Source: Penicillus capitatus (lineage: Eukaryota; Plantae; Chlorophyta). From it: DNA of 64,000 bases. Shown piece after piece: positions 10,767-61,564 of this stretch. A program made the translations under genes and the position numbers. The notes beneath the pieces were generated by a model, which worked only from the letters and a program-made list of their open reading frames with translations, was not told where the DNA came from and did no database searches. Within the stretch, counting starts at the first letter, position 1. Each line of letters opens with the position of its first letter. The stretch spans positions 930,001 to 994,000 of the forward strand of contig OZ287700.1 of the NCBI GenBank assembly GCA_965649825.1, in the 5' to 3' direction.

Positions 10767-12866
10767 ATGGCACATCTCGTCTGGAAGGATTTGACAGTGA
10801 GAGTCAAGACCAACGGCACTCAGAAAGGACCGAAACTGCTGCACTCTATCGATGGATGTGTTGGACCCAATGATCTCTTGGCACTCATGGGACCATCCGG
10901 CAGTGGAAAAGTAAGGACGTACGCCCGACCACACGAATTCGGTGCATGACCTGCTGCGCTTGTTAGACGACTTTGCTCGATGTCCTCGCCGGTCGTATTT
11001 CTAAAAATCTCTCCCGTACTGGATCGATCTTGCTCAATGGACATAAGAGCAATCTATCTTACGGCGTTGCTGCCTACGTCAAGCAAGAAGACGTGCACAT
11101 TGGAACACTGACCGTCAGAGAGACGTTGAGTTTTGTCGCCCGTTTTCGTCTGCCGTCTGTCATCAACGGCATCACACGTCAGCAACGCATCGAGGAAGTC
11201 ATTGCCGAACTTGGCCTCAAGGTATACCGACCTCTCGGATACACAACATAGGACACAGATCATGATGTGACAGGACGCTGCGGATGTGTTCGTCGGCAAC
11301 TGGTTTCTGAAAGGCATCAGTGGCGGACAGAAGCGTCGACTGTCGATCGGATGCGAACTCTTAACCTCTCCAACATTGCTCTTCCTCGATGAACCGACGT
11401 CCGGACTCGATGCGGCGAGCGCCTACTTTGTGATGAAAGGCATCCGATCACTGGCCGAAGGCGGCAGAACAGTGATCTCTGTCATTCACCAACCGTCGTC
11501 TGAGGTTTTTGAACTCTTCGATAAGCTCTGCCTTCTATCGAGCGGCAAAACAGGTCAGCGCATTCGTCACGTGCTCCTCTCTGGTCTTATACGGCTAAGT
11601 GTAGTGTACTTTGGCGATGCGATTCGTGCCATTGATATGTTTCAAGCGGCAGGTTTGCCTTGCCCCGATCACCGTAATCCGGCTGATCATTTTCTCCAGT
11701 GCACGAATCGAGACTTTGATTTGATCGATAACGACGTCTTCGATTCCGTGGATTCTCAGATTCAAGCGCTGACAGATGTGTACGAGAACTCCAAATACAG
11801 TCAGGACTTGCAAGAGCAGTGCAATCTCTTCTCTGTGGAGGGAGAGCGTTACCGTGGTCCATCCAAACGATCTCGTTATCTAGAACGACTTGGTGCACTC
11901 ACCTGGAGAACCTTTTTGGATTATATTCGCAATCTGGGAGTGTTTTGGATGCGCGTGGGTATGTATGTGCTCATCTCCATCTGCGTTGGCACCGTATACA
12001 ATGACATGGACAGAACCTGGATCGGGATTCAGTCCAGAGCAGCAACCCTGTTTTTTGTCACGGCCTTCCTCACATTTATGGCTATTGCTGCCTTTCCAGC
12101 TTACATCGAAGAACTTCAAGTGAGATGCAACGGAAGGATGGCGGCGTTCACCATCGTGATGTGTGCAGGTCTATTCAAAGGAGGTTCTGAATGGTTACTA
12201 TCCTACCTCTGCTTATGTTATGGCATCAACGGTTGCTTCATCGCCATTCCTATTTCTGATTTCCATTTCCAGCAGCGTCTGTGCATACTTCCTGGCTGGA
12301 TTGAACGACAGCGGAGAGGCCTTCGTCTACTTTGTCATAAATCTCTTCGTCGCTCTGCTGGTGAGCCATTGCTCTATGTGCAAAACATGAATCGGTAACA
12401 AAAGGGAAACGTGTTTTAGGTGACGGAAGGTCTCATGTTGACAATCGCTGTCATTGTTCCGCATTATCTGATGGGCATTGCAGGAGGCAGCGGCGCCATG
12501 GGCCTCTACATGCTCGTCGGCGGTTTTTTCCAAGCAAAGAACGAATTGCCAAATTTCGTATGGAAGTATCCCCTGCACTACATTTCTTTACAGACCTATG
12601 CGTTCACCGGATTGATCAATAACGAGTTCGGTGACACAGGGGACGTCTGGCAATGTCCTTGCATTCCAGGATCTTTAGGATCAAACTCCTCTTCGGCATG
12701 TTCCGATACCTGCACCGTAACTGGCGAAGATGTTATCCGATCTTTCTCGGTAGAGGTGAGAAATAAGTGGACGGATGTTGGCATCCTGGCTGGGATGTTC
12801 GTACTTTACAGAATTCTTTTTCTTATTTTGCTCAGCATCAAGGAGCGTAGACAGAAGTCGCGTTAG
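10767..12866 (+). CDS. ABCG (White/WBC) half-size ABC transporter, multi-exon
   Basis: Walker A GPSGSGK|T, signature ISGGQKRR, Walker B LFLDEPTSGLD, IHQP, followed by an ABC2 membrane domain. Confidence 0.95.
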
Positions 12867-12871
12867 ACATT

Positions 12872-15800
12872 TCATTCATTCAATAACTGCTGTTGAGGGC
12901 AGTTTGTATTCTTGTGTTTATTTTTTCGCGGTGTGAGGGTTCTGCACTGAAGGATACGTTGCAGGAAAATCTGCAAGGTCTTGTGTAGAGGGGCTGTTGT
13001 GCTTTGTAACGATGTCTGTTGTTCTGTCCATTTCTCAAAACGCGAAGGAATGCCGAAGTAGTGCTGCAATGCGTACTGCAGTGACCACTGTGTGACTTCT
13101 TCCCATCCCGTCTCGATCTCATACACGCTGTCCGATACCAACAGGCTCTCCAACAGTCCGAACTCCTCTTCCGGCAGATCCACTCGCAATCTGAGAAGAA
13201 GCTTGTGCGTTGTTCGCGAGGATGCTATGCGTTTCGTTACCGAACAAGGTGAACGTACAGCTTTGAGGTCTGCTTAAGGTCCTCACTCGATTGTCGAAAG
13301 CGATCGAGCTCGGACTCCATCTGATCTGTCAGATCCATGAGTTTGTGGAAGGTCGTCTGAAGCAGAGCATTCAGATGATCGACGTTTTGGGATCGAGTAT
13401 CCTGCAGGGAGACAATACTGAGCATGGATTGCTTCGCGTGGTAGTAAGGATGCCTTGTATTTCGTGAGGAGTCTCTTCTGTACGGCTCGATACAGTTCCA
13501 CCACGTGCTGCATTCGCATATCGAGTGAGCTGATACGTCGCCTCAGCCGAAAGTGATCTTCGATGACTTCGAGGTAAGGATCGGCAGGTGGATCATCCTA
13601 ATGTCACATCGCTGTGCAATTTCTCTCGTGAATCGTGCCACTTTGAGTCTCAACGTCGGCGGCGGCATGGAATGGACACGTTGCAGAAAGAGTGAGAGTC
13701 TTTGCTCGAAGTCCGCCAAGATGGGTAAGATGGATGGCAGATGGTCGGACTGAATTCGGTACCGACTACCAGATTTCGATGCAATAACCGTCACACGATG
13801 GCCATTCGGTGCCTCAAATGTCAAGACATTAGATTCCAAAGGATGGTGGAAACGTTGCAGCTCTGCGAGATCATCAAAAAGCTCTCTCAACGAAACGGCC
13901 TCGCCTTCTGTTTCCAGCACAAATCTGTGCTCTAGACAAATATCCCATTAGCGAATAATGATCCTACGGTTAGAGAAAACGCACTGGCTTCTTTGACAGG
14001 AGCGACGAGTCGGTAGAATCTCAGTAGAGGAATTCGTGCCTCCGATTGTACGACACAGGCACAGCCTTTGGCATTTCTGTAGGAAAGGACCAATCGGCAT
14101 GGATGATGGTCTACTGTTCCGAGGTGCGAGAATCTCAGCGGAATCAATGCTCGACCTTCTTCGCCGCATTCGACGATGGATATTGTCCAGGCATCCTACA
14201 AGAACTGCCCCTAGCGCATTCTCAGCTCTTCGGGATATTGACCTCATCGACGGACGTGCACGTTGGCGGCACCACCAGTAGATCGCAGTCGGTGATCGGC
14301 GCTTCGCCGACGCAGATCACTTCGATCTGCACTTCTACGGAATCGTCGGTGACGGAGGCTTCGTGTCGTAATCCGAATACGAGCGGCTGTTTTTGCGCAT
14401 CCGGGTAGAGAACACGGATAAGGACGTCGTCAGGTGAGGTGTTTGCCTCTCTCTGTGCCTGTTCCTCCTGGAGAGCTTTCTTCAGAGTCTTGTATTCAGC
14501 CTGAATCTTCTCCTGATCCATTCGGTCTCCCTTCGTAGTACATAAGGGCACAGGAGGCTCAGATACGATATCCTACAGTTGAGAATAGAGGGAGTTCCGT
14601 GTTGGGCTCTGTCCCGAGGTAATTGAGCGAAAGATGTCCTCTTTCATCGAGTGCCAAGATAACGCCTTCGAGTCCATCCACTTTGAGAACTGCCAGTGCG
14701 ATGGGTACCGTTTCGGCTTTTGCTGTCCATAGTAGCTGAGTTCCTCTGTATACCATCCAATGGCCTGTCTGTGTCGCAATGAGAGCGTGTGTCTCGGCAG
14801 AAGGACGGGACTGCGCCACCGAGTACGCACAGAGTGCCATTGGCGTGAAGTCAAATCGTTTTTGCAGCAGCAGAGATCCGTCGAGCGCTACATAGAAGAG
14901 TGACGTCTCCCCAATGCAGAGTAGAACGGGTTCACGCTCTACAGGCCAGCTTCAGAATTTGAAGAAGGCGATCGTCTCACCTTTGCCTGGACGAATAGAG
15001 AGATACCCTGGCGCGACATACGACACGATTTCGCCCATCTGGAGTTCCCACATGCGCTCGAGGGAGGATGAAGCTCGCTGCTCTACAAAACACAATTTCA
15101 TCAAATAGCAATACCCACCCAATCTGGATACGTGTGCTGCGGTGTGCTGTCTTTGGACTGCAGGCATAACAGACCAGGGTGAACGTTGAAGTAGAAGTGA
15201 CCAGAGCGTTCTCTTTGGGGAGATAAACCAAAGGTCCGGCAATGAGATGGTCACTCCAGTTTCCACTCACTTCTACCATTCCATTGCACATCCGATAAAG
15301 CTCACCGTCCAGGGATTGGACCCAGATGTTTGCCGCATCTAAGCAAAGGAAGTATGGGTCATACGTGTATTGCAAAGGGACGGACACGGCGTCGATTTTG
15401 CACCTTTGCCTGGTGTGTGTTCACTGACCATGTTGGCGACGGATCTCGGCAGCGAAAGACATTGAATCTCTCGGTGGGCGACGACGTCCGACGTCACGCG
15501 GAATGCGAGGAGTCTCACGCTCGTCGGGTGCAGGACTGCACAGGTTTTGCCTGTTCCACTGTCCGCGCATACGGTTAGGCTCAATTCGTACTGAGTAGTG
15601 CGTACGGTGTGAAGTAGCCTGCTTCGACTTGGAGGATCGGAAAGCGCAGGTCGAGCACGCAGAGTTGATCTTCCAGCCGATAGGCTCGAGTATGTGGACG
15701 GAAGATCCGAAGGACGCCGTTTAGACTGCCGATGACAACGAGCACTGTGAAAGTGTTTTCTTTGTTGCAAACAGCTCGTGCAGCGAAAACAGACCTTCGT

Positions 15801-15897
15801 TTGTGTCGAAGCTGTCTATACAGAGACATCCGTCGGCGAACTCCTCTGCATCGCCGACGCGTGTAGTCCAAAGAGGTTTGACTCGAAACAACGACAT
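12872..15897 (-). CDS. BBS9: BBSome subunit BBS9 (PTHB1), multi-exon
   Basis: Spliced start MSLFRVKPLWTTRVGDAEEFADGCLC...VIGSLNGVLRIF; YRGTQLLWTAK; LSLNYLGTEP; RYRIQSD; YRAVQKRLLTKYK; GWEEVT. All are typical PTHB1 motifs. Confidence 0.9.
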
Positions 15898-16898: not shown

Positions 16899-17099
16899 AC
16901 ACCCGATTGTCGATCGACCATCTCGATGGACACCCGATTGTCGATCGACCATCTCGATGGACACCCGATTGTCGATCGACCATCTCGATGGACACCCGAT
17001 TGTCGATCGACCATCTCGATGGACACCCGATTGTCGATCGACCATCTCGATGGACACCCGATTGTCGATCGACCATCTCGATGGACACCCGATTGTCGA
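16899..17099. repeat. Perfect tandem array, 31-bp unit x about 6.5
   Basis: Unit ACACCCGATTGTCGATCGACCATCTCGATGG, repeated without mismatch and without spacers. Confidence 0.97.
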
Positions 17100-17911
17100 G
17101 AGGTCACCACTCGCCAATCCCTTTCGACGACAATCAATTGTTTTTAAGCTGATGAAGTCAGTTGAATCTGGATTGTACTCGGTAGACAAAAACGCTTAGG
17201 GTACACGATCGCCGTATGATAGCGTCGTTGAGTCACTTTCTTACGAGATAAACACTAGGCGAAGTTTGGGTTAGCGCAACGTTGAGTCCAAAACGTGCCA
17301 AGACACAGAGACGGTGTGAATAAACCAGAACCAGAAATCCGAATAGCACTGAAGAATTTGACTGCCGATTATCGTACACCAAAACAGACGAGAATCGTCC
17401 GACTCGGCTCTAGATTGATGTCATTCTGCATTATTGGGTGGTCCTGACCTTGCGAATGAGTAAGACGAATCCGTTTATTGTTTGACAATCATCTATTCCT
17501 TCACTTTGGGATAACCGAGCGGTAAACCATCTCAGAAACCAATCGACATCTCTTCAACAACAACAATAGTCAACCTGCAGAGGAAGACAGCGAGATGACT
17601 GCCGCCGCCAATTCATTATGGGACAGCTCTGAAAACGAACTCATCTTTTCTAGTCAGGTGGACGATGTGCAATCGTTTGTTTGCGATTCTTTATGTTGTC
17701 GACGCAGATGAGATGTCATTTCACAAGCAGAACTCATACGAAAGACGAACATTAAAACGAAGCGAGGTATTCGACAGCATCAACAAGAGCGTCATCGATA
17801 GCAGCATGTATTAAACAATCGTGATTTCTGTTCCGCACGTAATTCTCATCTATCCATTTTATGTGTTGAATGTTGTCGCCTCTTTTAAGACGAGCAAATC
17901 TTGATGTCATT

Positions 17912-19330
17912 TCAGTAGGCATCGCGGAAAACACGCTGCCATGGTTTTGGATTTGGTTTGGTGTTTTCATGCTCCAAAGCAATGAAGGATTCATTGTGTC
18001 CAAGGTACTTTTTATTCGTCGATACACGAGAAACACTTCTGCGAAATTTAGTAACGATTTCGTCATCTCCCCTCAAGTATTCCAGAGACTCTCCCTGTCT
18101 TCGATGAAATGTAAATCTCTGTTGTTTGAAGTCCTCGTCTGGAATCTCCAGTGTTGCCTGAATGCGTTTCTTGATCTCTCTCAATTCTTCTCCTTTCTTC
18201 GCTCGGATCCAGAAAGGATTTCCGAAGGTCGACGACCTGCCATCAGATTCCCAGTGACAGCAATGAACCATGTACTCGTCTGATTTTAAGTACTGTTGAT
18301 CCTCTGGTATAACTTCTGCTCGAAGGGTCCAGTAAGTCTCGTCCAGAGACTCCAGTGATGTCTCTTGGTCCAACACCTGATCGAAAAACGATCCATGCGG
18401 TGTAAACTGATGTGAGATGTTACTTTGTCGATCCTGGAGTGTCGAATCCGCATGACTCGTATGTCGGAGCAGGCATAACCATCGCCAAGCTCTTGTTTCA
18501 GCTGTTCGATGAGATCACCTACTGTCGACTCTTGTGACAGTTGAAGCACGTGCACCGACTGCAGTTCAGATTGCAGGTTGTGGAAGAAGATAGGCAGACA
18601 TTTCATCTTTTCCAGAGTAGGAAGCTGTATGTTGAGAATCTCATAGTAGAGGGTGTCTATGTACCGATTGGATTCCAGAAGCATGGTTTTCAAACGGTCG
18701 GGTCCATTGTACTTGATGGGACTTGTGCGCGGCAAATTGTCATAATGATTCTGCTGTGTCAGACGAATCTTCTTGTAATCTTCCACTTTCAGGTGATTGG
18801 CCACTTCAATGGTCACCTGCTCGTAGCTCATCGTCTTCAGCAGATCCAACTTGAAGCCGTCATCCTATAGATATTGTGACATGATGTGACATGCGAGACA
18901 AAGAGAGGACCTTCGGATTCTTGAGCGGTCTGAAATGCACCACTTTTCGATTCCAAACGAACTCCAGAAATGACTCAACGGTCGGATAGGGACAGATCTG
19001 CTCAATCGCCTCAGATTCTGTGACGCGTTCTTGGATAATGATGATGTCACCTTGGATGAGTCGACACTGCGGTGGGAGAAGAGTGAGATTCTGTAGAGCA
19101 GGATGAGCACCTCACCTGCAATGCTGTATGATCAGGGTGCAAATGTGGACAGGTGACGTGGGGATAAGACTTCTCTTCTTTGAATCCGATGATATCTGCA
19201 TTCTGCGGAAGACCAGCTTGTTCCTTCGCCTCGTCTAGAATTCTTTGAATCTGCGTCGACTCCTCGACATAGAAGCATCCGACGTACGAGAGTCTTTTGG
19301 GTTTTAGATCAAAATGCTTGATGAAAGATG
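17912..19330 (-). pseudogene. USP7/UBP12-like copy 2; 5'-truncated fragment (UBL region and last exons only)
   Basis: Colinear with the 3' third of copies 1, 3 and 4, introns included. Homology ends abruptly at about 19330, where the HEAT ORF begins. Confidence 0.9.
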
Positions 19331-21483: not shown

Positions 21484-23203
21484 GGAGTTCCTGGCATGGC
21501 AGAGGCAGGACCTCGAACCGCAGGACGATGGCATGCACGTAGAGTGGAAGGATCTGCAACAACAGGTGGTCATCGCGTTCCCATTGACCGCTTCTTTTAT
21601 TGTCTGCTGTGAAAGCAGATCAAGAAATCAGGGTTGGAGTGCGATGAAGTCAAGACCAGATCCCTCACACACAAGAAGAAGATGAAGCCGGAGGCAGATC
21701 TGGTCTCCAAGGGTAAAGAACTGGCATCCGACACAAGCTATGCACCTTCCAGAATAATCGATGGAACGAGGGGTGTGAAGAGTTCTCTGGATGAACGCGA
21801 CAACGTCCAACGCTTGACGGCCAGTCGGACTCTGCCAAAGAGAACGTTGCCTACGCTGTCGAAGAAATACATGGCGCGTACGATGATGGCGAAAGTAGGA
21901 AGAAATGTCGGGATGAGAAGAACTCCGACTGGGGCAACTGACGCGATCTTTGGCACGTCGACTCCACGGGCCCTCCGTTCAGGTCACCGTGGGTCAGGGA
22001 AAGCGCCTCCAAAGAATCTAACATGCCCAACCTTGCAAAACGCAAAAGGCTGAAGAGGTGTTACCAATTGAGGGTACGACTAAGAGACGTTGGACATAAC
22101 ATGAGTGATTGCGACTGGTTGTAGTAGACTGAAAGCTGTGAAGAGTGGGTATACATGCTTCAGCATTCTGTCAATGCACAACAGTCCTAGTATGCTAATG
22201 TCAAGCCGTGTTTCGGCAAAGATTGAGATGAACAAGACGATTGTCGAGATTGCCATCACTGGCGAGAGTATGGTGAGCATCTGCAAGCAAGCATCTTGAC
22301 CTGCGACTGTGATGGCTGGTCGCATCACACTTAGGCTACACCTAGAAACCAATTCGAACGTCCCTTGCCTCGTTCTGCCTTTTTGTGGCCACAGGCGCTA
22401 GATTGTCTCTTCCGCATTGGCATGTAAGATGTGGTTATTCATGTAAGATGTGGTTATATCTCCCATGGCGATTCAATCATCTCGATACCCCGCCGTCTAC
22501 TGTAGCCTCGAAAACAGCTTTGGTACTCGCATTTGCAATGAGCAATAAGTAGTAAGTTAAACGGCGGATCTGTTAACATTCATGCATAAAAAGCTCCATC
22601 CTCATTCTTTGACAAGCGGAATTGTTCCCGGAACAGAGATGTGTGCAGGTGCCATGAACACAGCATACAGGAGTTCGCAATGTCTTCACAGTGATCCTCA
22701 TTGGCGTTCGCCACAGTCGAAGTCACCATTCTATTCACTGCTCTTCCACAGCGCGTCTAGTACATAATCATCACAACAAAGTGGAAACTACACAGAGCGA
22801 TCAAACTGGCGCGGACAAAATCCTCAGCGTAAATAGACCCTGGGTGGGCGGAGACTTGTTAAGGTTCTCTTTAGATCAAAGCCCATGCTGTATCTCTACC
22901 GAAGTTCACAGAAATAGATGGTACAGCGCACAGTGTCCACAAAGTCCTCAGGAAAATCGAAAAGCAAAAAACAGGCCACGGAATCGCTGATGTAAAGAAC
23001 TCCAAATCGTCGTCCAGCGCATCTCCACTGGTGCCTTTAGTAGTCTCTCCTGCATACGAGAATTGAGAACCATCGATTGAGAGGAAGTAAACTTACTCGA
23101 TAGACAGTGAAGAGCTCGCTGCAACAAAGGAGGCCTGTGCCAGTGGCACGTCAACGTGACATCCGCACAGGGAGTGTGGGAGAGTTTTGAGAGGGTGAGT
23201 GGG

Positions 23204-23746
23204 CTAAATTGTGTCCAGTGCGGCTTTCGGATCCGACGCGCTGCGCGGACATGCAGTTAGATGGTCCAAGAAGGGACCAGTAGTGAAAAACAGAATGCAA
23301 AATGAGAAAACTAACAAGAAGCAGAAACATAGAATAGGTAAAACAGAGAGACACAGACAGAAAAAAATGAAAGATTTCTCACAAATTCAATAAGAGACAG
23401 CGCAGGTTCAGACAGAAGACAGAGAATAGGAATAGAATGAGATTCATTCAGACTACAGAGCAGACTCAGAAAGAGCCGCAAGGTAACAAAAACTCGCAGG
23501 AAACGGGTGCAAGAAACTCAGACAGGCGTTCACAGGAAAACATAAGTGATGCAAGCTCGGTAAATGAGCTCAAAGAAAAAACACAGAAAACAAAGAGACG
23601 GGCACATATCACACATCAAAAACAAAAGAGAGGCTCCGTGGCATAACGAGGAAGACTGGCATCCAGGGGAAAGAGAGAAAAAGAGAAACATAGAAAAAGA
23701 CGGCCTGGATGCCGATCCGAAAGCCATGGCCGGAACACAGCCGCAC
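23204..23746 (-). other. Structured GT-AG-bounded insert A (long-range terminal stem, conserved hairpins, low-complexity linker)
   Basis: GGCTTTCGGATC (23222-23233) is the exact reverse complement of GATCCGAAAGCC (23714-23725). Hairpin GGCATCCAGG/CCTGGATGCC (23658-23713). 23-nt block 23234-23256 is identical to the one in insert B. Confidence 0.7.
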
Positions 23747-24102
23747 TCCGAGTCTTTGCCACTCCACTGTGGACGTCCAAGCAGATCATCTGCTATCCAG
23801 TTCTTGCGTGCCTGGCAATCCTCCTAAGGACATCGCTGCAGTCGAATGCAAACAAAGACATCTGGATTCGGTTACCTCTATGGTGAACGTTGCAGGAGAT
23901 CGTTTCTGTAGGCCTCTCGTTTGGATTCAGCATCAGACCCCAATCTACAAGAATAAAAGTGAGGTATAACATTTGAGTGACAGAGGGAACATACCTCTGG
24001 CTAGCGGCGCCGCACATTGAAACCTGGCAGAGCACCAGTGACCTCTCCCGAAAAGCAGCCCTGGGAAGAGTAAGAATTCCCAGTGTGATCGGCGAATCAT
24101 CC

Positions 24103-24703
24103 CTGGAATCGTCCTCTGGATCCGACGCGCTGCGCGGACATGCAGGCAGGAGGTCCAAAAAGGGACCAAGTACAGACACATGAAGGCACACCATACGCAG
24201 AGAGAGAGAGAGAGGAAACATGGATAAGAAAGACATGAGAACAGAGACATGAAGGTTTCACAGTAAAACTCAGGCCACACAGAACAAAGAGAGAGCAAAA
24301 GGCGTATAAAACGGAAAAAACATGCAGTCAGGGGACAACGGAATCGGTGGTCGGCACAGAAAGAATAAAGACTCACATAAAGTAGAACATGCAAAACGGA
24401 GATGATGAAGGACTAACTGAGGCACTTGAAAAGGCGAGCCAGAAAAAAGCAAAAAAGCAGTTATACAACGAGGGAAAACTCGAAAACAGTAAACGGGCAA
24501 ATCGGGAAGGATGAGTCTTATCCATAATACGAGCTCGAAAACAGGATCGCACAAGAACTGCAATCAAAGAAAGAAGAAAGAATCACAAGCAAAGTAAGCA
24601 CCGATTCCGTTGCCCAGATCGAAGAAGACGGGCATCCAGGGGGGAAGAGAGAGAAAAGGGAACAGAAGAGACGGCCCTGGATGCCGATCCAAAGGACTCT
24701 TAC
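24103..24703 (-). other. Structured GT-AG-bounded insert B, homologous to A
   Basis: GTCCTCTGGATC (24111-24122) pairs with GATCCAAAGGAC (24686-24697) at 11/12. Hairpin 24631-24685. On the minus strand it begins GAG|GTAAGA and ends TTCCAG|G. Confidence 0.7.
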
Positions 24704-24749
24704 CTCAGGTCATCGACCGAATCACGCGGCCGCCCAATGTCACGGTCTC

Positions 24750-27700
24750 TGCTCTCCCTGTCGCCCAGCCATCCTCCCTGACAATAGCGGCTGCCGCTGC
24801 CGGGGGTGTGGGTGGAGTGGATCATTGATTGCAATGAAACTGTGATCCTAGATTGAGCTGGTCTCGAAGTACGAGAAGGACGCGAAGTTCTCCAAGAAAT
24901 CCTTTCCCTCTGTCTTCGGCAGCTGACGAATGCGTTCTCCACAATGTTCAATGGCTGAAAGGTCATCGGCTTCTGAGGTGTCTGTTCCCGATCCAGTCGA
25001 CACCCGCCCTCAGAGAATTAAGGAAGAGCCTCTTCAGGACAAAGGCTCCTGGAGACTCCTGTCTTTCTGGACCCGACGCTTTTCAACTTTCTCATCTCTC
25101 CTGATCAGACGACCTTGAGCTTGGACGAGTATGTGGAATTCTTTACCTGATGAGGGTCGGTGATGCGGCGGACACGTGACCATTCTGTTCTGTCTTTTCT
25201 TCTTTGCCGTGGGCGATGAGTGCATCGGTCCTTTTATTGCTCCGTGGAAGAGTGTCTGTCACTCTGCTCGACCTCTCGAAGCCAGATCTGTGCCTTGAAG
25301 GCACATCTAGAATGTCCGCCGAGCATTCGGATGGAGGGGTTGCTTCCGAGCTGTAGCTTGAGGATTCGTCCAGTCCATGTTCGAAAAGCACACGATCCAA
25401 ACCGATTTCGCAAAGCCCCGAAAGATCTCGATGGAGCATTTTCAGAAATCCCTATCCAGAGCTGTGCTGCCAGTCGAGATTGGCCTGCAACAGTGGAGCT
25501 TGAATCGGCGATTGGTCTGCAGGAGTGTGCCTTACTGTCGCGTCTGGAAATTGCCCTCCATCTCTAGACACGTGTCGTCCTCTGTCAAACTGGATTCGGC
25601 ATCGTTTTCTGTCGACTGATTCATCTGTTGATACGAGTAGACTGTCCTTCTTCCGAGAAAGAGATGGAGAGAGACAGCACAGTTTCATCCAAAGTCTAGT
25701 CTGGCGTCAAGGAGTGTTCATGCCGTGATCGTCCTTTCCAGCGCCGCTCCGATTCTGTCAGGTGCATCCTCACTCAGTGCCAAGGGGACTGTAGACACAC
25801 CTGAGATGCGTGCATGCCCACTTTGTCGAAGCCGGAGAGGTTTCCGGATCATGGCTAAACTGTAGTAACTCGGACGGATCGACTGTCGAAGGGATTTGAT
25901 GTCCATTCCAGCATCGGGGATTTCATGTTCCTGGAAGTCCTGCCACCCGGCTTGTTATTCGTGTCTCTGAAGTGCAGCTGCCAAAACGCAGAGTCTCTGA
26001 TGTCTTTGAATCCGATCCAGAGAGATTCAGTAGCCGTGGCAGAAGGTGGACCCCTCATTACTCTATGTCGCACCTTGTCTTCTGCAAAACCACTGGCTGC
26101 CTGTAGATGTACCATCGTCGTCTGATAATGCGTCCATCCAGGTTTATGGACCAGATCTCTTTGTTTAATGAGTGCTTTCCGAGTGCTCCGTTCCTCTTCC
26201 GCCTGTCAAGACACTGAGTCCCCCATGACGTCAGTTTTATTCCTTTTGTGCGTTATGGCCTACCGAAGAGATCATTGTCGCTTCTACTCCTTTCTGAAAG
26301 AGTGACTCTCACTCTTACAATCTTCCTGTTGCCCGAGTCGGATTCCAGAAGAGAATCCACAAGTCTCAGTCGCCGGACGATTCGGATGAACTGCTTCTAA
26401 GCCGACCTACAGAAGTCCGGCTTGTCCATCTTCCAGAAGCACGGCCTTCGCACCATTCTAACAGTGGAGCTCTGGAGGAAGCTGATGCAGCAGGCCAGAA
26501 ATGCTCTCTCGACTAAATCATGCCGTTGTCAGTGAAACTGGCGCCAAAACGACTCGATGAACTGCCTGCAAGAGTGTGTCTCGAAGGCTCATCAAAATGT
26601 TGCCTTTTAACTCCTCGCTCCTGACATGTCCTCTTTCGTCAGGCCTGGACGCAATCTCCTTTACCAACTGCTTTCTTCTTCCTTTGGCAGGATGTACCTT
26701 CTGTGCAAGTGAAATGCTTTAGATAGTCGATGTTTATTCGACTCAGACTCGGTCTTGCGGACGAACATTCACTCCATGCTCATCCTTCTTCAATGCAGCA
26801 TTGATCCTGTGAAATGTAGACTCATTTTGCGCTGAGGAGAGAGCAAACATACCTGGAATCAATTGATTTACTATTCGTCAAAGCAAACAGGTCCCTCTGA
26901 TCCCTGCTCCAATTTCATGCATAAGCCATCGATTGAATGGCCCCAAAGAACGTTTAACGTTCCCTCGAGGCACCAAAACTTCTTCTAGTTCTTCCTGCCG
27001 GTCTGCATCCAACAAGAGCTTCTTTCCATGTGAAAGGCATAAGAAATGCATGCGACCTGATCCCTTGTCATCTCGTCAAGCGTGGTATTCTGTAGACCGA
27101 AGACAAAGGGGCAAACTCCGATATTCCTCCATAGCAATCCTGTCTTCTTCAGAGCCAATGACCACTGACGGATGTATCAGTGTCTGATACTGCTGTCATG
27201 CAATCATTCTCATTATTCTCTTCTAGATCTCTCCCTCTCCAACATAGAGGATGTTGCCACTCGATGTCATTGTTCAGGTTTCTTGTCTGTCAAGGTCTGT
27301 GATGATCAAGACCCAACGATGTCGTCGAATCCAGAGTTTCTGTTCCGTTGCATCTCTTCTGCCGTCATGATCACCGCATGTTTGCAAATCCACCATCGTA
27401 TGAGTAGATGGACTGAATCTCCAGGAAAGGACATGATTCTGACAATACTTTCGACCAGAGATCCTTTCTAGATGCAGCCAGACTGCTGTGGATGATTCCT
27501 CCCTTCTTCAGAATCACTCATCTAGAATGCCATGCCTCCCACATCGATTCTATAGGAGACCAGGAGCCTGCAGGTTACCATTCGAGTTTGGATTTCGAGG
27601 GAGTTGATTCTACATTGTTGTTCATGTCGAAGGGCCGTTTGGTCAAGGACATGCTCATATGTCGAAGATGAATCCACAATCCAACTGAAGTTCGGGACTG

Positions 27701-28085
27701 GTTCAAATGGGTCCAACAGGATGGAAACTGCGGTATGTGCTGCAGGCTCGCTTCACAAAGTCCTCCTGCAGAAAAGAACGCTCTCAGCATGATATGTCAT
27801 AGTGAAAGGCGTGCTCCGGGGACCTTACACATTCTCTGACGGATAGGAAATATCAAAAAGGATGCCAATAAGCCTTGCAGAACGGATCGTCGAGCTAGAT
27901 CCTTTGTCCGGTACATCAGAGCTGCGTCTTTTTTCTTCAGCAGATCTCTCTGCCAGCAGTCGAGTCTTCCAGCACAAAAATCGCTGTCACTGTCACGTAT
28001 TCACTGCGTCTGGGTGTCTCCTTACCGTGTCAGATAGCGATGCTGTTTTACTGAACATTCCATGAAATCACCTCATCGGAGTGGA
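24750..28085 (-). mobile_element. Heavily decayed APE-endonuclease/RT (LINE ORF2-like) remnant
   Basis: Ordered motif remnants across frames: ISWNV (28054-28068), IFVLED, IGILF, SR|IN (split at 26807-26852), RPIS (25475-25486), PLS, EADDL...LENFASFS (24959-24973 onward). The RPIS-to-ADD distance of about 510 bp fits a LINE RT. Many stops and frameshifts. Confidence 0.45.
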
Positions 28086-29319
28086 TGAACATGCTTCGAT
28101 CTCCTCTTAGTAGCTGTCCTTGAAATGCAGGCATTAGACAGCGTTGGAAGTACGGCTGTACCTTACCGATGCACATGACGACTGTCAAGCTCATTCTTGC
28201 CTCATCTAACTGGTCGGAGATAACAGAGGATTTCATCCACTGCTCTGGCATGGGCATATCCAACACACAATCCACTTCTTGCAGATCACCAGCCACTTCA
28301 TCCTCTGCTCCAAGAACCAGTCCATCACTCAATCCACCTGTCCACAGAATCCCGTTTTGACCGGATCGACATTCTCTGCCTTCTTCATGTAGTCTGTTCT
28401 GAAACACAGATGTGGAACGAGCAAACGAGCATGCATCTATCTGTACCTTGTTGTTGCTCATTGCGTCGGTCAAGCTGGCTTTCATGTCATCAACGAGTAC
28501 TGCAACACTTCTTCTGCGTCTTCATATGTGTGCTCTGTAAGCGAATCTGGCATGTCGCCTCATGTTCCAGAAAACCAGTCCATCAATCAATCCACCTCCT
28601 CGCAGACCAGAAAGACACCTCCTCGCCTTCTGCTCCAGGAAAATAAACCAATCCAGCACTCCATCCACCTCACACGAATCCGGACACCTCGCTGTCCACT
28701 ACCGACTCAACAGTCCAGCACGTCGTCCACCACATCGCAGATCCAGCTCCGCCTCATCCTCCGCTCCGAGCCATCCAGTATGACAGCCACCAAACCAGTG
28801 GTACCGTACATCTCGGTGTCCTCTACCTACTCTGAGTCCGATCCAGCACATCTTCCGCCCCATCACAAGAACCGGACATCACACAAGCCTCGCTTCCAGG
28901 AATGATCGAATACGACTGACTGCCACTTCCTCTCAGATCCTGAACCCGCTGCATTCATTGCTTCCATGAACGATCCAAACAACAACCAGCCTTTCCGGCA
29001 AATCCAGGCGTCTCACCAACCACTGTCGCCGCAATCGTTGATTGCATTTCAAAATCCATCCATCCTTCCCAGAACAAGGATGCAACACATGAAGAACAAC
29101 ATCAGAAACCAAAGACACAGACACCAGCCGCCACACGCCACATAGAAACTTGCAGATCAAACTAGATTCCATAGAAAAAGCCACCAGAAACAAGCCCTCA
29201 GCCCGAAAAATGTCAGAGATGACGGAACTATACAAACAATCAGATCGACAATGACTTTCCAGACTTGTCAAAAACAGCAGAAAAAGCAAAACAGTTGGCA
29301 GAAACCAGCACATTGTCAA

Positions 29320-29580
29320 AACACAGATTACTGGTTCTATTCATCACACTTTCAAATGTGTGAGATTTATATTTTTTTGAATTTTTGATTTTTTTATTTT
29401 TTATTTTTTTCAGAACAGATTACTGGTTCTATTCATCACACTTTCAAATGTGTGAGATTTGTAATTTTTTTTAGAATTTTTGTTTTTTTATTTTTTTTTT
29501 TTTTCAAAACAGAATATTATTTATTCTATTCATCACACTTTAAAAAGTGTGAGATTTGTGATTTTTTATTTTTTGTGACT
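29320..29580. repeat. Three about 46-bp hairpin-containing repeats separated by poly-T tracts (left arm)
   Basis: ACAGATTACTGGTTCTATTCATCACACTTTCAAATGTGTGAGATTT at 29323 and 29415 (identical), with a variant near 29524. Confidence 0.9.
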
Positions 29581-29690
29581 ACAAAGAAAACACTAGTAAA
29601 ACAAAGGCGATGAGGGCGCGTTAACTGGCGGAATTTCCCACCCTACGAACTACACACAGATACGAAAGAGTTAGAAGAAGAAAAACAAAA

Positions 29691-30503
29691 CTAAAATGCA
29701 GAACTTACGAAATTTAAAGTGTTGCAGTACATCAGGGTATCCGATCCAGCATACCCTGATGTTGACGTCCGCGAACATGGACTAGGAGTTTCCTCCCAGT
29801 CCATGGCATCGTCGTCGCACGTGGGTTCGGAGAACCCGCATGTGGCAGCTCGTGGCGGTGGCTGCGGTGCAAATGGCGGCAGTGAAGTAGCCTGTGAAAA
29901 CAATACAAGTCTTAGAGGGAGATTAACAACGGATGGATGTCTTACCTCGAAGCCGTGATTTGAAACTTCAGACTGCCTTGCGGTCAGTCGTTCGCTCCTT
30001 TCTTGTGCAGAAAGGCGGCGAGGGCGCCTGCTAGCAGATGGATGCCCGGTCTGATCTGCAGGCTGGCCAAACCGGGCACGTGTCTCCTCTTCCCTCGCCG
30101 CCATCTGAGCGGGCGTCTTTGCTCTTAGGCCCCGGTAGAAAGCTTCTTTTTCGGCCGGAGACATATGTCTGAAGCCGTAAAACGTGTTTAGGGCTTCGCT
30201 AAACCTGTTTCGAAGAAGCACACAACACAAAACAGTCAGTAAGCGTTGACAGATGAGGCGGCGGTCGCAGGCAACGACCCATGGAACGAGATGTCGCATG
30301 CAGAACGACAGGAAAGGCGGCCCCGTTTCCGTGCATGCGACGGCCAGAACGGCCAGCGACTCGCACAGAATGCGCGGGAACACGGAAAAGCGACGCGCGG
30401 CTGAGATACCGCAGTGGCGCGTTGCGTCGGCGGCGGCAACGAGGAGAATGACTTACTTGTCCCATGGGTTAGCGCCGCCTTGGTTGTTGGAGCGGGAATC
30501 CAT
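29691..30503 (-). CDS. Three-exon orphan gene, about 168 aa (left-arm copy)
   Basis: Mirror of 60644-61456, with the same splice sites and apparently the same protein. Confidence 0.65.
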
Positions 30504-31538
30504 CTTCTTGAACTTGGTCGCTGAAGGAAACGAGAACCTGGAAACGGGAACGCGAATAAACGCAATGGGCAGATCAACTGGAAGCCGCCTCGGTTGCCGT
30601 TAAACGGTCTGGAGATGCCTGGGATGGGGTCTCTGACCGGTTGCATGACGGACGCATCGGCCAACAGATCCGGGGAACCGTGTGCCGAATCGTCACGACA
30701 CGGAGCAGTCCTGCTGACGTCGTCTGCGCATCCAGACGAACGTCTGCGGAGACCAAGTGAGTTTTGCATCCGGGCCGCAGAACTCTCTTGCGAGGTTCGC
30801 ATCCCTGAGTCGCCCTTGATGAGCATGCCGCAGCCAGAGAGAGAGGAATCGGCTGACAGTTCGGACTCTCGAGAAGAATTCCGAAGATGCCTTGGCGACT
30901 AGGGGGTGTCAACGACAGCACCGGCAAGGCATACGCCACACTCGCCGTCGCTGAGGCCGGAAGTTCCGCTTTCCTGACGAGAGAAGTCTGCCGTGAGGGC
31001 ATGAAAACCGTGAAGTAGCTATCGTTTTGAGGCAGATTCTGGGCGTCTAAGGTGCCTGTGTGTTCTCGGGACTGCGGATGATTCCAGAAGTGATTTGGAA
31101 CGTGGCATGCTGCTCGGACGTGTGCGCGGTACACGATAGAAGATGTGCGAGAGTAATCGTTTACAGATCAGTGTTCTGTCATTCAAGGTTCGGGTCGATG
31201 GCGTGGTGTTTGCCCGATGAAGACTGTGTTTCAGCATCGTGTAGCGATCTCGGCAAATAGATGTATTACCTCCGAGCATCCTTTTATCCGAGATCTAACG
31301 TCCTAGAAGAGTTAAGCTGTGGTAAAACACTTTAAAAAGAAAGTGGCATGGCAATGTTGATATCCCCTAAATGAATCGTTGCGGCTGACACCTGCCTTCA
31401 TTTCGACACGGTAGCTGCGAAGGAGAAAGACGAGGATTGTAAGTGTGAATGTAATAGATCTTACAGGACATTGATGTTCATCTGTGTCACGCGTGTGATA
31501 TTTCAGGATACATTTGTTTAGAGGGTGGTCTCATACTA

Positions 31539-32620
31539 GTGCCACTTCCTCACTGGATAAAGTGCAGAGCTTCTCGAACATCGATCAGTGATGGATGCAC
31601 ACATGAAGAGAAATCGTCTCGATGTGCAATTCTTAGGAAACTGAGGATAACGAAGCATCGCATTTCAGATTTCCTCGTCGATCTGCATTTCGAGACAACG
31701 ATTCCGTCATCCATACGTGTTGCTGTCTCACAGAGAATGGATGCTGCCTTAAACAACCACTGCGTTTTCCTGCTGGATGTGGTGCATCTGCTGAGATACC
31801 ATGATATATTCCTTCATCCATCCGGGGACGAAAACTTTGCCATTTCTAAGAAAGGTGACAGTTTCGGTAGCCACAGAGGCTTGAAGGTGTTAAGTGTCAT
31901 GAGAAGAGAGATGCTGTTGTATCCACGGCAGACGGCACGCTATTCGCATGGTAACAAAAGAACTTCGAACGGCTGTCAGAACTGGATGGAGAGAGGTCAT
32001 ACGAGGAGACCAAGAAACGGGATAACGGATTGGCTCCTTCGATTCCTCCGAAGCGGCGAGCGAGATTTGCGGGAGTACGCTGGAATGGGTCAGTCACCAC
32101 CTCTTCAGAGGTCGTTGACGGCAAAGCCTACGGAATCGGTATATGGAACCGTGAATTCCAGAGACCGTTGATATATTTGTCCCTCGTTCCCGTACGACAA
32201 GGGCCACGATGAACATGAGTTACACCTTAAGACACGCAGCGCGACCGTCGACTTCATACTCAAGGAGGCATTGGACGTTTCAGCGACTCGGAGGACTGCT
32301 TTCACCAGGGGACGGAGTGCTTTGGTCTTGCAAAGAAGTCAAACAGAAGGTATTCGTTGCCTTTTCGGACGCTGGGTCAGTCTGGAACCTTTCGAGAAGC
32401 TGAGTTCTGTCCGTTTCTGTTTATTCATGAAGCTTGGACTGTATTCGTACCTGTTTGTCGATTGACGGAGGATTGACATCCCTAAAAAAAGTGTGCCCTT
32501 GACGCCAGCGAAGGTCGCTGAGTTTCCCTCTAACACTCTTGCCTTCTCTATGGCTGATGGACACTGAAAACGAAAGTGTGAGATGCCGTGAGTGATTGGA
32601 TGCTGAAATGCCAGCGGGTT
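31539..32620 (+). pseudogene. Decayed member of an unknown dispersed gene family
   Basis: Homologous to 46500-47290 and to about 58560-59607 (reverse). Shared frame PSFPYDKGHDEHELHLKTRSATVDFILKE; in-frame TGA and frameshifts. Confidence 0.5.
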
Positions 32621-35600
32621 GCAAGGATGCACTTCGTGACAATGGGCAAGCAGAGCTGGACGGTAGATAGGTGGAACAAAGAGGACAATCGAATCACCCA
32701 TCTGCGTAATGTCGAACGCTCGTGATGTGTGGCGAAGAGTGATAGATCGTGGCGATCGTCCATCTCCGTGTAATAACCCCTTTGACTATCCAAAGTGCTA
32801 TTCGAGAACTTTACAACTGTCTCACTTTACAGCTGTGCTGCAGACAGTAACTGACACAGTTCTAGATCGATGTCGATGCAAAAAAGCAAGTGGAGATCTA
32901 TTCCTTCCGGTGTCAAGACAAATCCAAGTGTGAAGGTCGTGCCTCAGTTAGTGGTTCTCACTGGGGCTCTGAACTTCTTCTGCACATTTTCAACAGGCTC
33001 AGTTTCGCTGAAGGAATTTCAAGCTGCTGGTCATCAGGCGGATGGGTTGCCAGACAGCCAGTCGCAAAGATTTCATGCGGTTCGATCCTTGTTTCTTGAG
33101 ATTCGATCTTTCTCTGCGAACCCGTTTCAACTTCTTACAGTCCTTCGTCTCTGTAAACGATTTCTGTTCGGGGAGTAAGTGGATACAGTCAATCAACTCA
33201 GCAGACATGACTTCAATCCACAATTCATCCGTTCAGAATGAAACACATCAACGAGACAGACGTTCTGAGCAGTACTCCCTTCACCATTGATCATGAAAAG
33301 ATCATTAGGCGTGGTCCGGACAAGACTTGGATTGCACCAAGAACTCTTTGAGCAGGAGTCTACGCGTTATCTTAGAGAAATCTACACGACCGGCGGCGAT
33401 CAGATACGAGAACGAACTGTTTGGTAGAATAGCCCTGTGACCTTTTAGTTACAAGAAGATCGTTTACTTTCCAGACCCCGACGGACGTGAGCGCTCCTTG
33501 AACACGGTTCAACCTATCTTCACAACGAGCTCTGGCACTTAAAGCAACAGTCCTGCCTTGGAGCTTCAGTCGAAAAAGAACTTCAAGACGGCACTGGACA
33601 ACGCATCTCGACCAAGTAGACTGCCCGTTCGGCACCAGCAAAGAGAAACGTTGTTTCTTTGGCAGACACGTCGCCGAGAACCTCGATGCGGTAAGCAAAG
33701 GCAACGTTCTGAGTAAACAATCCGTCACTCTGTTTCTGCAAACCCAATCGATGCCTACAGTGTAGTGTCAGAAATCACCACGAGTGTCATACGTCAGATA
33801 CTTTGGAAATAGATTGAATCCGTAGCTTGTTTCGAAATCTGCGATGTGCTTGTTGACCAGAGAGTACCCACCACTACGAATGTAGGCCTGCTCTCGCAAA
33901 GAGAATGTAAAGATGCATGCAGCCCATAATATGTGACGGAATGGTCCCGCTAACCTGACGCCTCGACTGTTAATTCAAGAGATGGACAAATCAAAGAGAA
34001 GTAGGACTGCCCCTCTCTCAATTAGCTGCCAGCTTTACTCTTCTGATGAGTGTAAACAGTGAATCTGCTTCTCTTGGACTTCAACCCCTATGCTCGCGCA
34101 GCACTCGCTTTGGCCCTCACAGTAAGTGGCATTCCCAGCCTCGCCGAGAAAACCCGTGAGTGGGTGCTCCGAGAACTGCGACCTTCTGTCACTTATTCGG
34201 CACGATGAGACCAGAACCTGGAACTCGATCAGACGGAAGTGGCGGCTCTGATACCCCTTAGAGCGGGTTATGATGCTCTTTAATTCGCGGCAGCAGATGA
34301 GCTACTTCCGCGATCGCGCGCCCAGACAGCGTCTCGGTTTCGAATTCGTCCCGCATCGCACGGGGTCCATCTCGAATGAGCGTTTCGCTGACGGTAAAGG
34401 GTAAGTCATCACAAACCGGTGAAGGCACTTTCAGCCCAAACGCCGAGCACGCTGACGAACGTCACATCACGCCATATCCTTCCAGCGTCTCCGACGTGTC
34501 GCCGTTTTCGCCAGGCCGGGTTTTCTACCTCTTCCTGGTCTCTCCGACGCTCAAGGCGACCATGTCCTTAAATGCAATTGCCTTTGCCGTTGTCACTCTT
34601 TTCTGCCTCCATTCGGTGACATCGTGTTCTCTGTCGATGATGGCCCCTACCGTTTTCTCACTTCTTGACAGGTCGTTGCCTACCGTCCGGCGCAAGAAAG
34701 TGTTGTCTATGGACACGGAAACGTTTTCAGCGAACCACTTGCGAATCATATCCCCGTCAACATTCGTACCAGCTATTCCAAATGCGCGCTCAAGTTTGCT
34801 CAGCCGTCCTCGCAGGGTTCTTCCCAGGTCGGATGTGGATTGCATACAGCTATGCGTCGTATAAGGCGTCCACGATAGAGCAATGTGCAACCATGTGCTG
34901 TTCAGGCAAGATTTTATGACTTAGGGGCCTTCAACAACGTTATTTGCGTAGCGGGTGGATCCATTCCCTGTATGGCATTTGATTTGAACGGAAATAACGA
35001 TTGCCGACTGATCGGATATATACCCACCTCCTATTTCTATTCACCCATCGTAAGCAGTGGAGTCTGTTAGAAACGACGACGTCCGAAGAGGTGGGCACAC
35101 AGACCAATGCCAATTCGAACTCATTCGCAGAGAGTTTTGCATATCCTCTCTGAAACGGATTCAAATATGATACGCACACATGTAATGAGCAGACTCTCTG
35201 TTTCTTGAATTCGATTCTCTTATCAGCGTGTCTCCTGTTGGCTACTGAGCAGAGAGAAGATCGCATCACTCTTTGTTTTTTGTAAATATCTTGTTGATCT
35301 TCAGCCTTTTCTGAGATTCCACTGGACTTTCGCCTTCGTGAGTTTGGCACTAATCCCGAGGCAGTAGATTGATGGATTCCATGGGTCCATGCAGTAGAAT
35401 CCTGCAAAACCAAAGGAAATGCAAAACAGAAGGCGGCGTGCTAAGGGTGCATCGAAATCAAGGTTGGCCTTATCTGCATCCATATCCACAAGACAAGAAC
35501 TACTGCATACAGAAACTTGAAATGCCTGAAGAATAGTGACTGACGATCATCTTACGCCAAAACAGATACGAATCTATCAAGTTGCGTAGGAATTGATGTT

Positions 35601-36076
35601 TTTCTGCTTTCTTGAACGGTGGGTGATGACCTTGCAAAGGTGCAAGGGCGAATTCGTTGATTGCTGACTCAATTGGCTATTCATTTACTTTCAGAAAAAA
35701 GAAGCCACTACAGAAATTGTTCAACACCTTTTCGACAACAACACTCGGCCTGCAGAAGAAGAGCATGCATGAGTTGGCTGCTGCCGCCTTGCAATGGAAC
35801 CATTCTGCAAAACGAATCTATCCTTTCTATTCAGGAGAACGTTCATTCGCGTTTCTTTTATGTGACACAGCTGAGATGTCATTGCACAAACCTATCTCGA
35901 ACGAACGGACGAACATCAAAACGAAGCCAGGTGTTCGACAGCATCAACAAGAACGCCATCGATAGCAGTATGCGTTAAATGATCGTGATTTGTGTTCCGC
36001 ACGTAGTGCTCATCCATCCTCTTTCATGTGCCCAATGTTGTCGGCTCTTCTAAGATGAATAGATCTTGATGTCAAA

Positions 36077-55300: not shown

Positions 55301-55311
55301 GCTACGAGCAG
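52311..55311 (+). pseudogene. USP7/UBP12-like copy 4; nonsense codon in MATH and 3' end deleted
   Basis: D*GF (TGA at 52796-52798) where copy 3 has SWGF. Coding homology stops after ...MSYEQ at 55311 and jumps to 3'-flank sequence. Confidence 0.9.
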
Positions 55312-61456: not shown

Positions 61457-61564
61457 TTTTGTTTTTCTTCTTCTAACTCTTTCGTCTCTGTATGTAGTTC
61501 GTAGGGTGGGAAATTCCGCCAGTTAACGCGCCCTCATCGCCTTTGTTTTACTAGTGTTTTCTTT

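Follow-up and report, generated by a model that had tools for sequence, protein, structure and literature searches.

Two large inserts, here named elements A and B, lie close together on the minus strand of a 64,000-nucleotide stretch of DNA deposited under the name Penicillus capitatus (contig OZ287700.1). This stretch, which we call the window, is part of the 1.17-Mb eukaryotic contig ctg340500 (39x coverage) of metagenome assembly ERZ25074695 in the European Nucleotide Archive (ENA). An earlier reading of it (the original prediction) had described both inserts as bounded by GT and AG and as sharing a covarying secondary structure, and they are indeed present at the coordinates it gave. In the sense direction, the parts of the A/B unit are:

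24704-24830, minus strand: conserved purine-rich flank ("exon") directly upstream of B
24103-24703, minus strand: element B, 601 nt as bounded in the original prediction, upstream in the sense direction; 5′ GUAAGA at 24703-24698
23747-24102, minus strand: spacer between B and A, 356 nt; contains a conserved 50-nt intron (23994-23945)
23204-23746, minus strand: element A, 543 nt, downstream in the sense direction; 5′ end GUGCGG at 23746

The two elements share blocks at their ends. A 23-nt core previously reported as identical between them is real and occurs exactly twice in the window, where shuffled sequences predict no occurrence, but the true identical stretch is longer, at 28 nt (GGATCCGACGCGCTGCGCGGACATGCAG). 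It forms the first part of a 51-nt block with 90% identity at the left ends of both elements on the plus strand, and a second common block of ~90 nt lies at the right ends. As had been claimed, the middles of A and B are unalignable, leaving ~400 nt per element free in sequence and length; their composition is nonetheless alike (43% A, 25% G and 12% T on the plus strand), a skew that makes the interiors pyrimidine-rich on the minus strand. A repeat check of the interiors uncovered just short low-complexity runs, and an origin of these regions from tandem repeats was rejected accordingly. No third copy was found within the window by searches with the core, the hairpin or nhmmer end-block profiles.

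Beyond the window, a search for more copies of the core and hairpins, which the original prediction had suggested, yielded 12 further copies in six loci. The total is thus 14 copies in seven homologous loci (the window, L003, L047, L048, L049, L050 and L051), all from assembly ERZ25074695. According to nhmmer searches with two end-block profiles, each locus holds exactly two elements on one strand, in the order B-type, ~360-nt spacer, A-type. Because the gene caller of the assembly had annotated an open reading frame (ORF) running from the pyrimidine-rich interior of B through the core, a core peptide profile of 34 columns (GPFLD.L.ACPRSASDP) could be used as bait against 1.84 billion representative proteins. 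Seven matches were obtained, including the ORF of the window itself, and four of them are ORFs of further copies that led to L047, L048/L049, L050 and L051; no core-bearing ORF outside the seven loci was found among these proteins. L003 was reached via a 92%-identical copy of the reverse transcriptase of an L1-like element in the window, and it carries two copies in unchanged order and spacing.

The L1-like element is a retrotransposon without long terminal repeats (41230-46265, plus strand), with an ORF1 of 603 aa and an ORF2 of 1075 aa that contains Exo_endo_phos_2 and RVT_1 domains. L003 has a copy with 93% identity, and the related assembly ENA ERZ26696514 contains relatives whose amino-acid identity is 58-67%.

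The seven loci differ in how closely they are related. With 95% identity, L051 is the product of an inverted segmental duplication; it starts inside the window and runs past its end. The duplication relates window positions 27139-35620 to 55524-64000, at an identity of 95.8% in the window itself and of 94.8% when the 12.6 kb shared with L051 are compared, and it places a second, inverted copy of the whole A/B unit ~3 kb past the window end. Partial synteny with the window, at 65-88% identity, extends to L050 and L048/L049, and L003 has only the A/B unit in common with the window and is not syntenic. The units of L048 and L049 (ctg340196_31x and ctg340197_32x) are near-identical. Between them, an indel of 1 nt affects the conserved leader, the first pair of P1 in element A (see below) has changed from G to A, and a further indel of ~750 bp lies upstream; the two loci could be haplotypes or recent duplicates. 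Contig coverages are unequal (39x, 42x, 31-32x, 15x and 3x), indicating that some loci are paralogs within one genome and others homologs contributed by related strains or species.

Wider searches brought no copy from another source. The exact 23-nt core had no match in metagenome contigs of the Joint Genome Institute (JGI), and a degenerate version matched there 37 times, all by chance, in bacterial contigs of 57-74% GC that lack the other blocks. A chimeric peptide of the conserved blocks, taken in all frames, gave nothing at E≤10 among 5.8 billion proteins, for which the blocks are too short. A 43-residue profile of eight sequences, run against a lossy word-indexed database, returned P0021 alone among 37 candidates, which lends weak support to a low copy number. 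By nhmmer, applied to the window, L001-L006 and L044-L051, no copy was present elsewhere in ~165 kb of ERZ25074695, nor in 135 kb of the related genome ERZ26696514 (L004-L006 and L044-L046), which was sampled via reverse-transcriptase homologs.

Both elements share one fold, whose parts follow one another in the sense direction as the 5′ arm of helix P1, P2, P3, a variable pyrimidine-rich stretch, P4, a core that holds P5, and the 3′ arm of P1. An additional helix, P0, occurs in A-type copies. The components are:

24686-24697, minus strand: B, 5′ arm of P1, GUCCUUUGGAUC, pairing with 24111-24122
24111-24122, minus strand: B, 3′ arm of P1, GAUCCAGAGGAC
23714-23725, minus strand: A, 5′ arm of P1, GGCUUUCGGAUC, pairing with 23222-23233
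23222-23233, minus strand: A, 3′ arm of P1, GAUCCGAAAGCC
23743-23746, minus strand: A, 5′ strand of P0, GUGC, the first 4 nt of the insert, pairing with GCAC at 23218-23221
23218-23221, minus strand: A, 3′ strand of P0, GCAC
24631-24685, minus strand: B, hairpin P2, an 11-bp stem (GGCAUCCAGGG/CCCUGGAUGCC) with a 33-nt pyrimidine loop starting CCGUCU
23658-23713, minus strand: A, hairpin P2, a 10-bp stem with a 36-nt pyrimidine loop
24599-24615, minus strand: B, 5′ strand of P3, GGGCAACGGAAUCGGUG, pairing with 24333-24349 (17 bp, 249 nt enclosed)
24333-24349, minus strand: B, 3′ strand of P3, CACCGAUUCCGUUGUCC
24152-24167, minus strand: B, hairpin P4, GGUCC-loop-GGACC
23263-23278, minus strand: A, hairpin P4, GGUCC-loop-GGACC
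24118-24145, minus strand: B, nearly invariant 3′ core, CUGCAUGUCCGCGCAGCGCGUCGGAUCC, holding the small hairpin P5
23229-23256, minus strand: A, the same 28-nt core

The closing stem P1 forms 12 of 12 pairs in A. In B, 11 of its pairs are of Watson-Crick type, and the remaining one is read as G.U from the minus strand and as C.A from the plus strand. The compensatory change claimed for this 12-bp stem is real: the inner 5 bp (GGAUC/GAUCC) are common to A and B, while the outer 7 bp differ and still pair. Also as claimed, the stem of A extends further, since in A-type copies the first 4 nt (GUGY) pair with the 4 nt after P1 to form P0, which in A itself (GUGC/GCAC) sits beyond a 17-nt bulge. 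P1 starts 0-6 nt from the 5′ GU in B-type copies and ~21-30 nt from it in A-type copies. It is followed with no gap by P2, the hairpin described earlier as GGCATCCAGG...CCTGGATGCC with a pyrimidine loop on the minus strand and found in both elements (arms at 23658-23667/23704-23713 in A and 24631-24641/24675-24685 in B). Across copies P2 has 10-11 bp and a pyrimidine-rich loop of 21-36 nt starting CCGUCU.

About 20 nt after P2 begins the 5′ strand (GGGCAACGGA...) of P3. In most copies this long-range helix has 9-17 bp, and it encloses 47-253 nt. P4 is the GGTCC-loop-GGACC hairpin of the original prediction, and P5 is a small CGCG-NNN-CGCG hairpin inside the core whose loop differs among copies. 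The core carries UGCAUG in 13 of the 14 copies and UGAAUG in the B-type copy of L003. Minimum-free-energy folds of whole A, whole B and the A-type copy of L003 all contain P1, and the fold Z-scores of the copies tested were -3.3, -5.8, -1.6 and -2.8.

Covariation was assessed with an alignment of 13 distinct "mini" sequences, in which the 5′ and 3′ parts of each element are joined by an artificial A8 linker that replaces the interior. Standard pairs make up 97% of the 397 cells at the 31 named pairs of P1, P2, P4 and P5; as a control, sliding the 3′ partners by 1-3 columns left just 23-53% paired. Seven pairs changed on both sides, a count equalled in 1 of 500 shuffles, and the covariation score was 0.184 versus 0.117 (0 of 500 shuffles). 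RNAalifold recovered P1, P2, P4 and P5 de novo. Double changes at three P1 pairs separate A-type from B-type copies. Further ones occurred inside one type: P1 of the A-type copy of L047 (A_L047) went from G-C to A-U, P1 of the B-type copy of L003 from U-A to C-G, and P2 of the A-type copy of L003 likewise from U-A to C-G. At P2 pair 23/66, a series from A-U through G.U to G-C can be followed across L048 and L003.

The helices outside this set covary among homologs as well. P0 occurs as GUGC/GCAC, GUGU/ACAC, GUGU/GCGC and GUGU/AUGC, and P3 as GGGCAAC/GUUGCCC, GGAUAAC/GUUAUCC and GGGCGAC/GUCGCCC, with ACGG/CCGU versus ACAG/CUGU. Element interiors fall to 12-50% column identity across the seven diverged loci, and the shared blocks are kept. 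The fold is real and under selection. This bears out what the original prediction had surmised, and the larger alignment that it had proposed as a check, with 12 more copies, exceeds its controls.

No described RNA family accounts for this fold. Rfam 15 gave no match at gathering scores in the whole window and none at E≤5 in 22400-25100 on both strands, in line with the earlier statement that no hammerhead, hepatitis delta virus (HDV), group I/II, small nucleolar RNA (snoRNA) or tRNA signature could be recognized. Group I and II introns, hammerhead, HDV and twister ribozymes, retrozymes and snoRNAs were thus not matched. The GUGYG start of A resembles that of group II introns, but the start of B-type copies is GUAAG or GUCCU, and a hairpin like domain V was not seen; snoRNA boxes were likewise not present in A or B.

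The transcribed strand can be read from the helices. On the minus strand, the non-Watson-Crick cells of P1-P5 comprise 13 G.U versus 2 A.C, and P0 and P3 add 9 G.U cells; the G.U cells trace to ~8-10 independent events and the A.C cells to 1-2. A G.U pair on the minus strand corresponds to a C.A mismatch on the plus strand. The G.U excess and two conserved tiny minus-strand introns establish the A/B unit as a spliced minus-strand transcript. Folding energy was dropped as a guide to the strand since both strands fold better than shuffles and are not separated by it.

Three ordinary introns and a candidate 3′ splice region of B provide the frame for judging the borders of A and B (carets mark splice junctions):

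23945-23994, minus strand: intron GUAUG...UUGUAG, 50 nt; GT and AG kept in 7/7 loci
23050-23096, minus strand: intron GUAAGU...AUGCAG, 47 nt; 5′ GUAA(G/A) in 7/7 loci
11553-11603, plus strand: intron of an ABC-transporter gene, ~51 nt
24060-24076, minus strand: candidate 3′ splice region of B, UUCUUAC-N9-CAG^G; AG at 24062-24061, exon from 24060; in 6/7 loci

The 50-nt intron keeps a CUCAC-like branch site in six loci, all but L003, and the AG and CTRAY-like branch site of the 47-nt intron are conserved in 6/7. In all three introns the CTRAY-like motif lies 10-17 nt before the AG. The intron of the ABC-transporter gene, located elsewhere in the window, indicates that ~50 nt is the usual intron size here, and the premise of ~50-nt introns in the original prediction is thereby upheld.

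Nearly every locus has, at the A and the B position alike, a consensus-like 5′ splice site that stands directly before or at the outermost helix. For B it reads AG^GUAAG in 6/7 loci, and for A it reads GA^GUGYGG in 6/7 and UG^GUGAGU in L003. The GT...AG ends first proposed are thus true in the window, and the 5′ GT is conserved, but the 3′ AGs are not conserved in homologs. Other candidates are available at this end. In 6/7 loci, P1 of B is followed ~40 nt later by a branch-like UUCUYAY with CCAG^G, which is better conserved than the AG at 24104-24103. With its candidate branch A at 24071, the 5′ linker of B would be 6 nt long and the other 39 nt, or 45 nt together. A perfect CUAAC immediately upstream of the core, present in the A-type copies of 4/7 loci and in no B-type copy, is the candidate branch site of A, and ~45 nt downstream of it lies (C/G)AG^A in 5/7 loci.

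The flanks of the elements look non-coding. The flank at 24704-24830 includes ~115 nt of purine-rich sequence that is the best-conserved part of the unit (~0.8 mean pairwise identity in five loci), and with indels of 1, 4 and 7 nt among homologs it is under non-coding constraint. In flank and spacer, homologs differ by indels of 1, 2, 4 and 7 nt, and such indels also separate the window from its 95% duplicate. Removal of B does join two ORFs in frame in the window, as had been noted, but these frame-breaking indels restrict the join to the window copy. In a comparison of the window with L050, the three frames are conserved to the same degree, and none of 20 ORFs around the A/B unit had a Pfam match. 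A protein-coding host gene was dropped on these grounds.

We assign a probability of roughly 0.55 to the reading that A and B are two long spliceosomal introns, structured and homologous to each other, with a terminal helix that unites the splice sites. They would be ~540-640 nt long and reside in a spliced, apparently non-protein-coding (or fast-decaying) minus-strand transcript whose ordinary introns have ~50 nt. By looping out ~580 nt, P1 would place the 5′ splice site ~45 nt along the chain from the branch and 3′ splice region, so that a long intron may resemble a short one for a spliceosome tuned to tiny introns. The idea of a stem joining the splice sites, already part of the original prediction, fits both the geometry and the tiny introns of this transcript: the ~45-nt path in B is close to the full length of normal introns here. 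The invariant core and the inner helices would serve more than this, for example a bound factor or an intron-derived RNA.

Several observations weigh against this reading. The AG first assigned to the 3′ end of B (24104-24103) is lost in L047, L048 and L049, and that of A (23205-23204) is restricted to the window and L051. The other five loci instead have (C/G)AG^A 9 nt upstream of the AG of A (UGGAG^A in four and CUACAG^A in L003), and the 3′ borders of both elements are consequently uncertain. In A, P0 pairs the GU itself, and in the B-type copy of L003 P1 starts at the GU; a helix so near the 5′ GU undercuts the minimum of 10 nt for yeast zipper stems (PMC12350175) and could be an obstacle to U1 binding instead of an aid. 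Internal loops weaken the closing stem in the B-type copies of L050, L047 and L048. A simple zipper leaves the conservation of P2-P5 and of the 28-nt core unexplained. The G.U excess could in part stem from a mutation bias linked to transcription (C>U in 3 events, A>G in 4). Finally, we infer the excision of A and B from the sequence, and since the flanks are not demonstrably coding, the label "intron" derives only from the conservation of splice signals.

An alternative is that A and B represent an undescribed class of large (~550 nt) intron-resident structured RNA with at least six helices and an invariant 28-nt core, whose fold does something beyond aiding splicing. We consider this possible but rather doubtful. 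Such an RNA might guide its own excision through structure, yield a stable or circular intron RNA, or act as a protein-sequestering scaffold on its pyrimidine-rich body, and the two copies per transcript might be kept alike by selection or gene conversion.

Another possibility, which we also regard as improbable although worth weighing, is that A and B are not excised at all. A long non-coding RNA would then contain them as structured domains, or they would be an independent structured RNA of ~550 nt present twice in tandem, and the adjacent GU and AG would be incidental. Six covarying helices and an invariant core are more elaborate than a splicing aid needs, the flanks have the non-coding character described above, the 3′ AGs are unconserved, and conservation continues across the supposed exon-intron borders. 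However, incidental splice signals fit poorly with a consensus-like 5′ splice site at the outermost helix in both positions and with conserved ordinary introns in the same transcript, and the ~400 nt per element that evolve freely behave like intron interiors. The lack of any Rfam match also speaks against this possibility.

It is unlikely that A and B are structure-defined, non-spliceosomal ("nonconventional") introns in which the terminal helix guides excision. Precedents exist in Amoebophrya introners (PMC7789003) and euglenids (PMC4770533), and A and B similarly have a helix right at their ends that varies in sequence and keeps its pairing, with an AG whose position relative to the helix varies. 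But the 5′ GUAAG/GUGAGU signals are of canonical form, and neither the CAG/CUG pairing nor the junction pyrimidine/purine signature of euglenid introns is present. Direct repeats of 3-5 nt were sought across the A and B borders and are lacking except for a trivial AGG in B. A search for dinoflagellate spliced-leader relics found none, and the elements occupy two positions only rather than forming a genome-wide class.

Even less probable is an origin as decayed or domesticated foldback DNA transposons, akin to miniature inverted-repeat transposable elements (MITEs), or as introners, whose inverted ends are kept at the DNA level. The ends are complementary, two homologous copies lie in non-homologous immediate contexts of one gene, and L003 is not syntenic with the window. 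Against this, one locus family holds all 14 copies, and within it they occupy two fixed positions. A target-site duplication, a hallmark for which the original prediction had advised looking, is lacking, because what flanks the shared GGAUC...GAUCC is inverted rather than direct sequence. Terminal sequence differs between A-type and B-type copies in the outer 7 bp, with no conserved terminal inverted repeats, the nested helices P2-P5 are unlike such repeats, and G.U is tolerated on one strand only. The ~165 kb of ERZ25074695 and 135 kb of ERZ26696514 that were searched yielded no copy elsewhere, and the search of 1.84 billion proteins matched these loci only. Nothing supports mobility of A and B, and the earlier suggestion of an introner-like or retrozyme-like mobile family is not sustained, given also that no ribozyme or other Rfam family was matched.

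That the blocks are mere leftover similarity from a decayed local duplication without function, as the 356-nt distance between A and B and their unalignable middles might suggest, is very improbable, because the blocks are kept in seven loci with strongly diverged interiors, compensatory changes maintain five or six helices, and the 28-nt core is identical in A and B though their flanks are unrelated.

If A and B are structured introns, both may stem from one event, a duplication or copying within the gene before the loci diverged. They are homologous only inside P1, which indicates that an intron was copied to a second site of the same gene, or that a segment was duplicated, before that divergence. 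Within a locus the two elements are sometimes more alike than positional homologs are: the two L003 copies have three P2 changes in common, and A and B have their identical core. Such likeness suggests strong constraint or some gene conversion.

Other features of the window lie apart from the A/B unit. A gene for a USP7-like deubiquitinase is present in at least four diverged copies, at 614-5351 (plus strand), 17829-19330 (minus), 35992-40756 (minus) and 52332-55321 (plus), with 78-92% DNA identity and UCH, USP7_ICP0_bdg and USP7_C2 domains. A tandem array at 16899-17099 has a 31-bp unit with a palindromic GATTGTCGATCGACCATC. Fragments of the gene for PTHB1/BBS9, a BBSome component, are found at ~13800-15830 (minus strand) of the window and at 18408-20444 of L002, and the organism is therefore probably ciliated or flagellated.

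Should A and B prove to be excised introns, they would offer a natural case of a short-intron-tuned spliceosome handling a long intron, a question usually studied only in yeast, with the answer recorded in the compensatory mutations of a eukaryote unrelated to yeast. Set against known zipper stems, their fold is much more elaborate and also better conserved. It is matched by no described RNA family, and A and B may also be a new functional intronic RNA. They also illustrate that sequence-related introns with paired ends need not be introners, since two intron copies in one gene, inherited via locus duplication, mimic introners at first sight.

Among known systems, introner-like elements of Dothideomycete fungi and MITE-derived introners, reportedly described by van der Burgt et al. 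2012 and Gozashti et al. 2022, are longer-than-usual, stably structured introns in short-intron genomes, with related members at different positions. These families comprise tens to thousands of near-identical copies in unrelated genes, and A and B differ from them in having no such multiplicity or mobility signature.

The introners of Amoebophrya (Syndiniales) have inverted repeats of 8-20 nt at the intron ends, which form a hairpin uniting the exon borders and whose sequence is not family-specific (PMC7789003). They number in the thousands, lie in unrelated, fast-evolving and mostly unannotated genes, and mostly have non-canonical borders and direct repeats of 3-5 nt (PMC7789003). A and B would likewise join exon borders through inverted ends of varying sequence, and their host shares the fast evolution and the lack of annotation, but they occupy two positions in one locus family, begin with a canonical 5′ GU, have no direct repeats and contain an elaborate internal fold.

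In nonconventional and intermediate introns of euglenids, a stable helix unites the ends, compensatory changes are seen between homologs and some members have a 5′ GU (PMC4770533, PMC3935182). The terminal helix of A and B with its compensatory changes resembles this arrangement. The euglenid signature consists of pairing of +4, +5 and +6 with -8, -7 and -6 (mostly CAG/CUG), the junctions being preceded by a pyrimidine and followed by a purine, and structure beyond the ends is weakly conserved (PMC4770533, PMC3935182). This motif and register were found at neither end in any of the 14 copies.

Zipper stems close long introns of Saccharomyces cerevisiae, including those of RPS17B, RPL7B and others (PMC2536676, PMC12311795, PMC12350175). 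Their linkers fall in a range of 42-85 nt, a gap of at least 10 nt to the 5′ splice site is required, and the stems are 20-30% conserved (PMC12350175). With the candidate branch site, the linkers of B would total ~45 nt and lie inside this range, although its 6-nt 5′ linker falls short of the yeast rule, which counts as a further point against the reading of A and B as zipped spliceosomal introns. Unlike yeast zipper stems, P1 closes nearly the whole intron rather than a segment, is conserved with covariation, and is accompanied by four or five extra conserved helices and an invariant core.

Introns with a conserved structure that control their host gene or code for an RNA, such as introns of yeast ribosomal-protein genes and those with intronic snoRNAs (PMC12350175), provide the remaining comparison. 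Although A and B have neither snoRNA boxes nor an Rfam match, and their host is no recognizable protein gene, they resemble these introns in carrying an intron-resident structure with covariation, and their invariant sequence suggests that a factor binds or that an RNA is processed from them.

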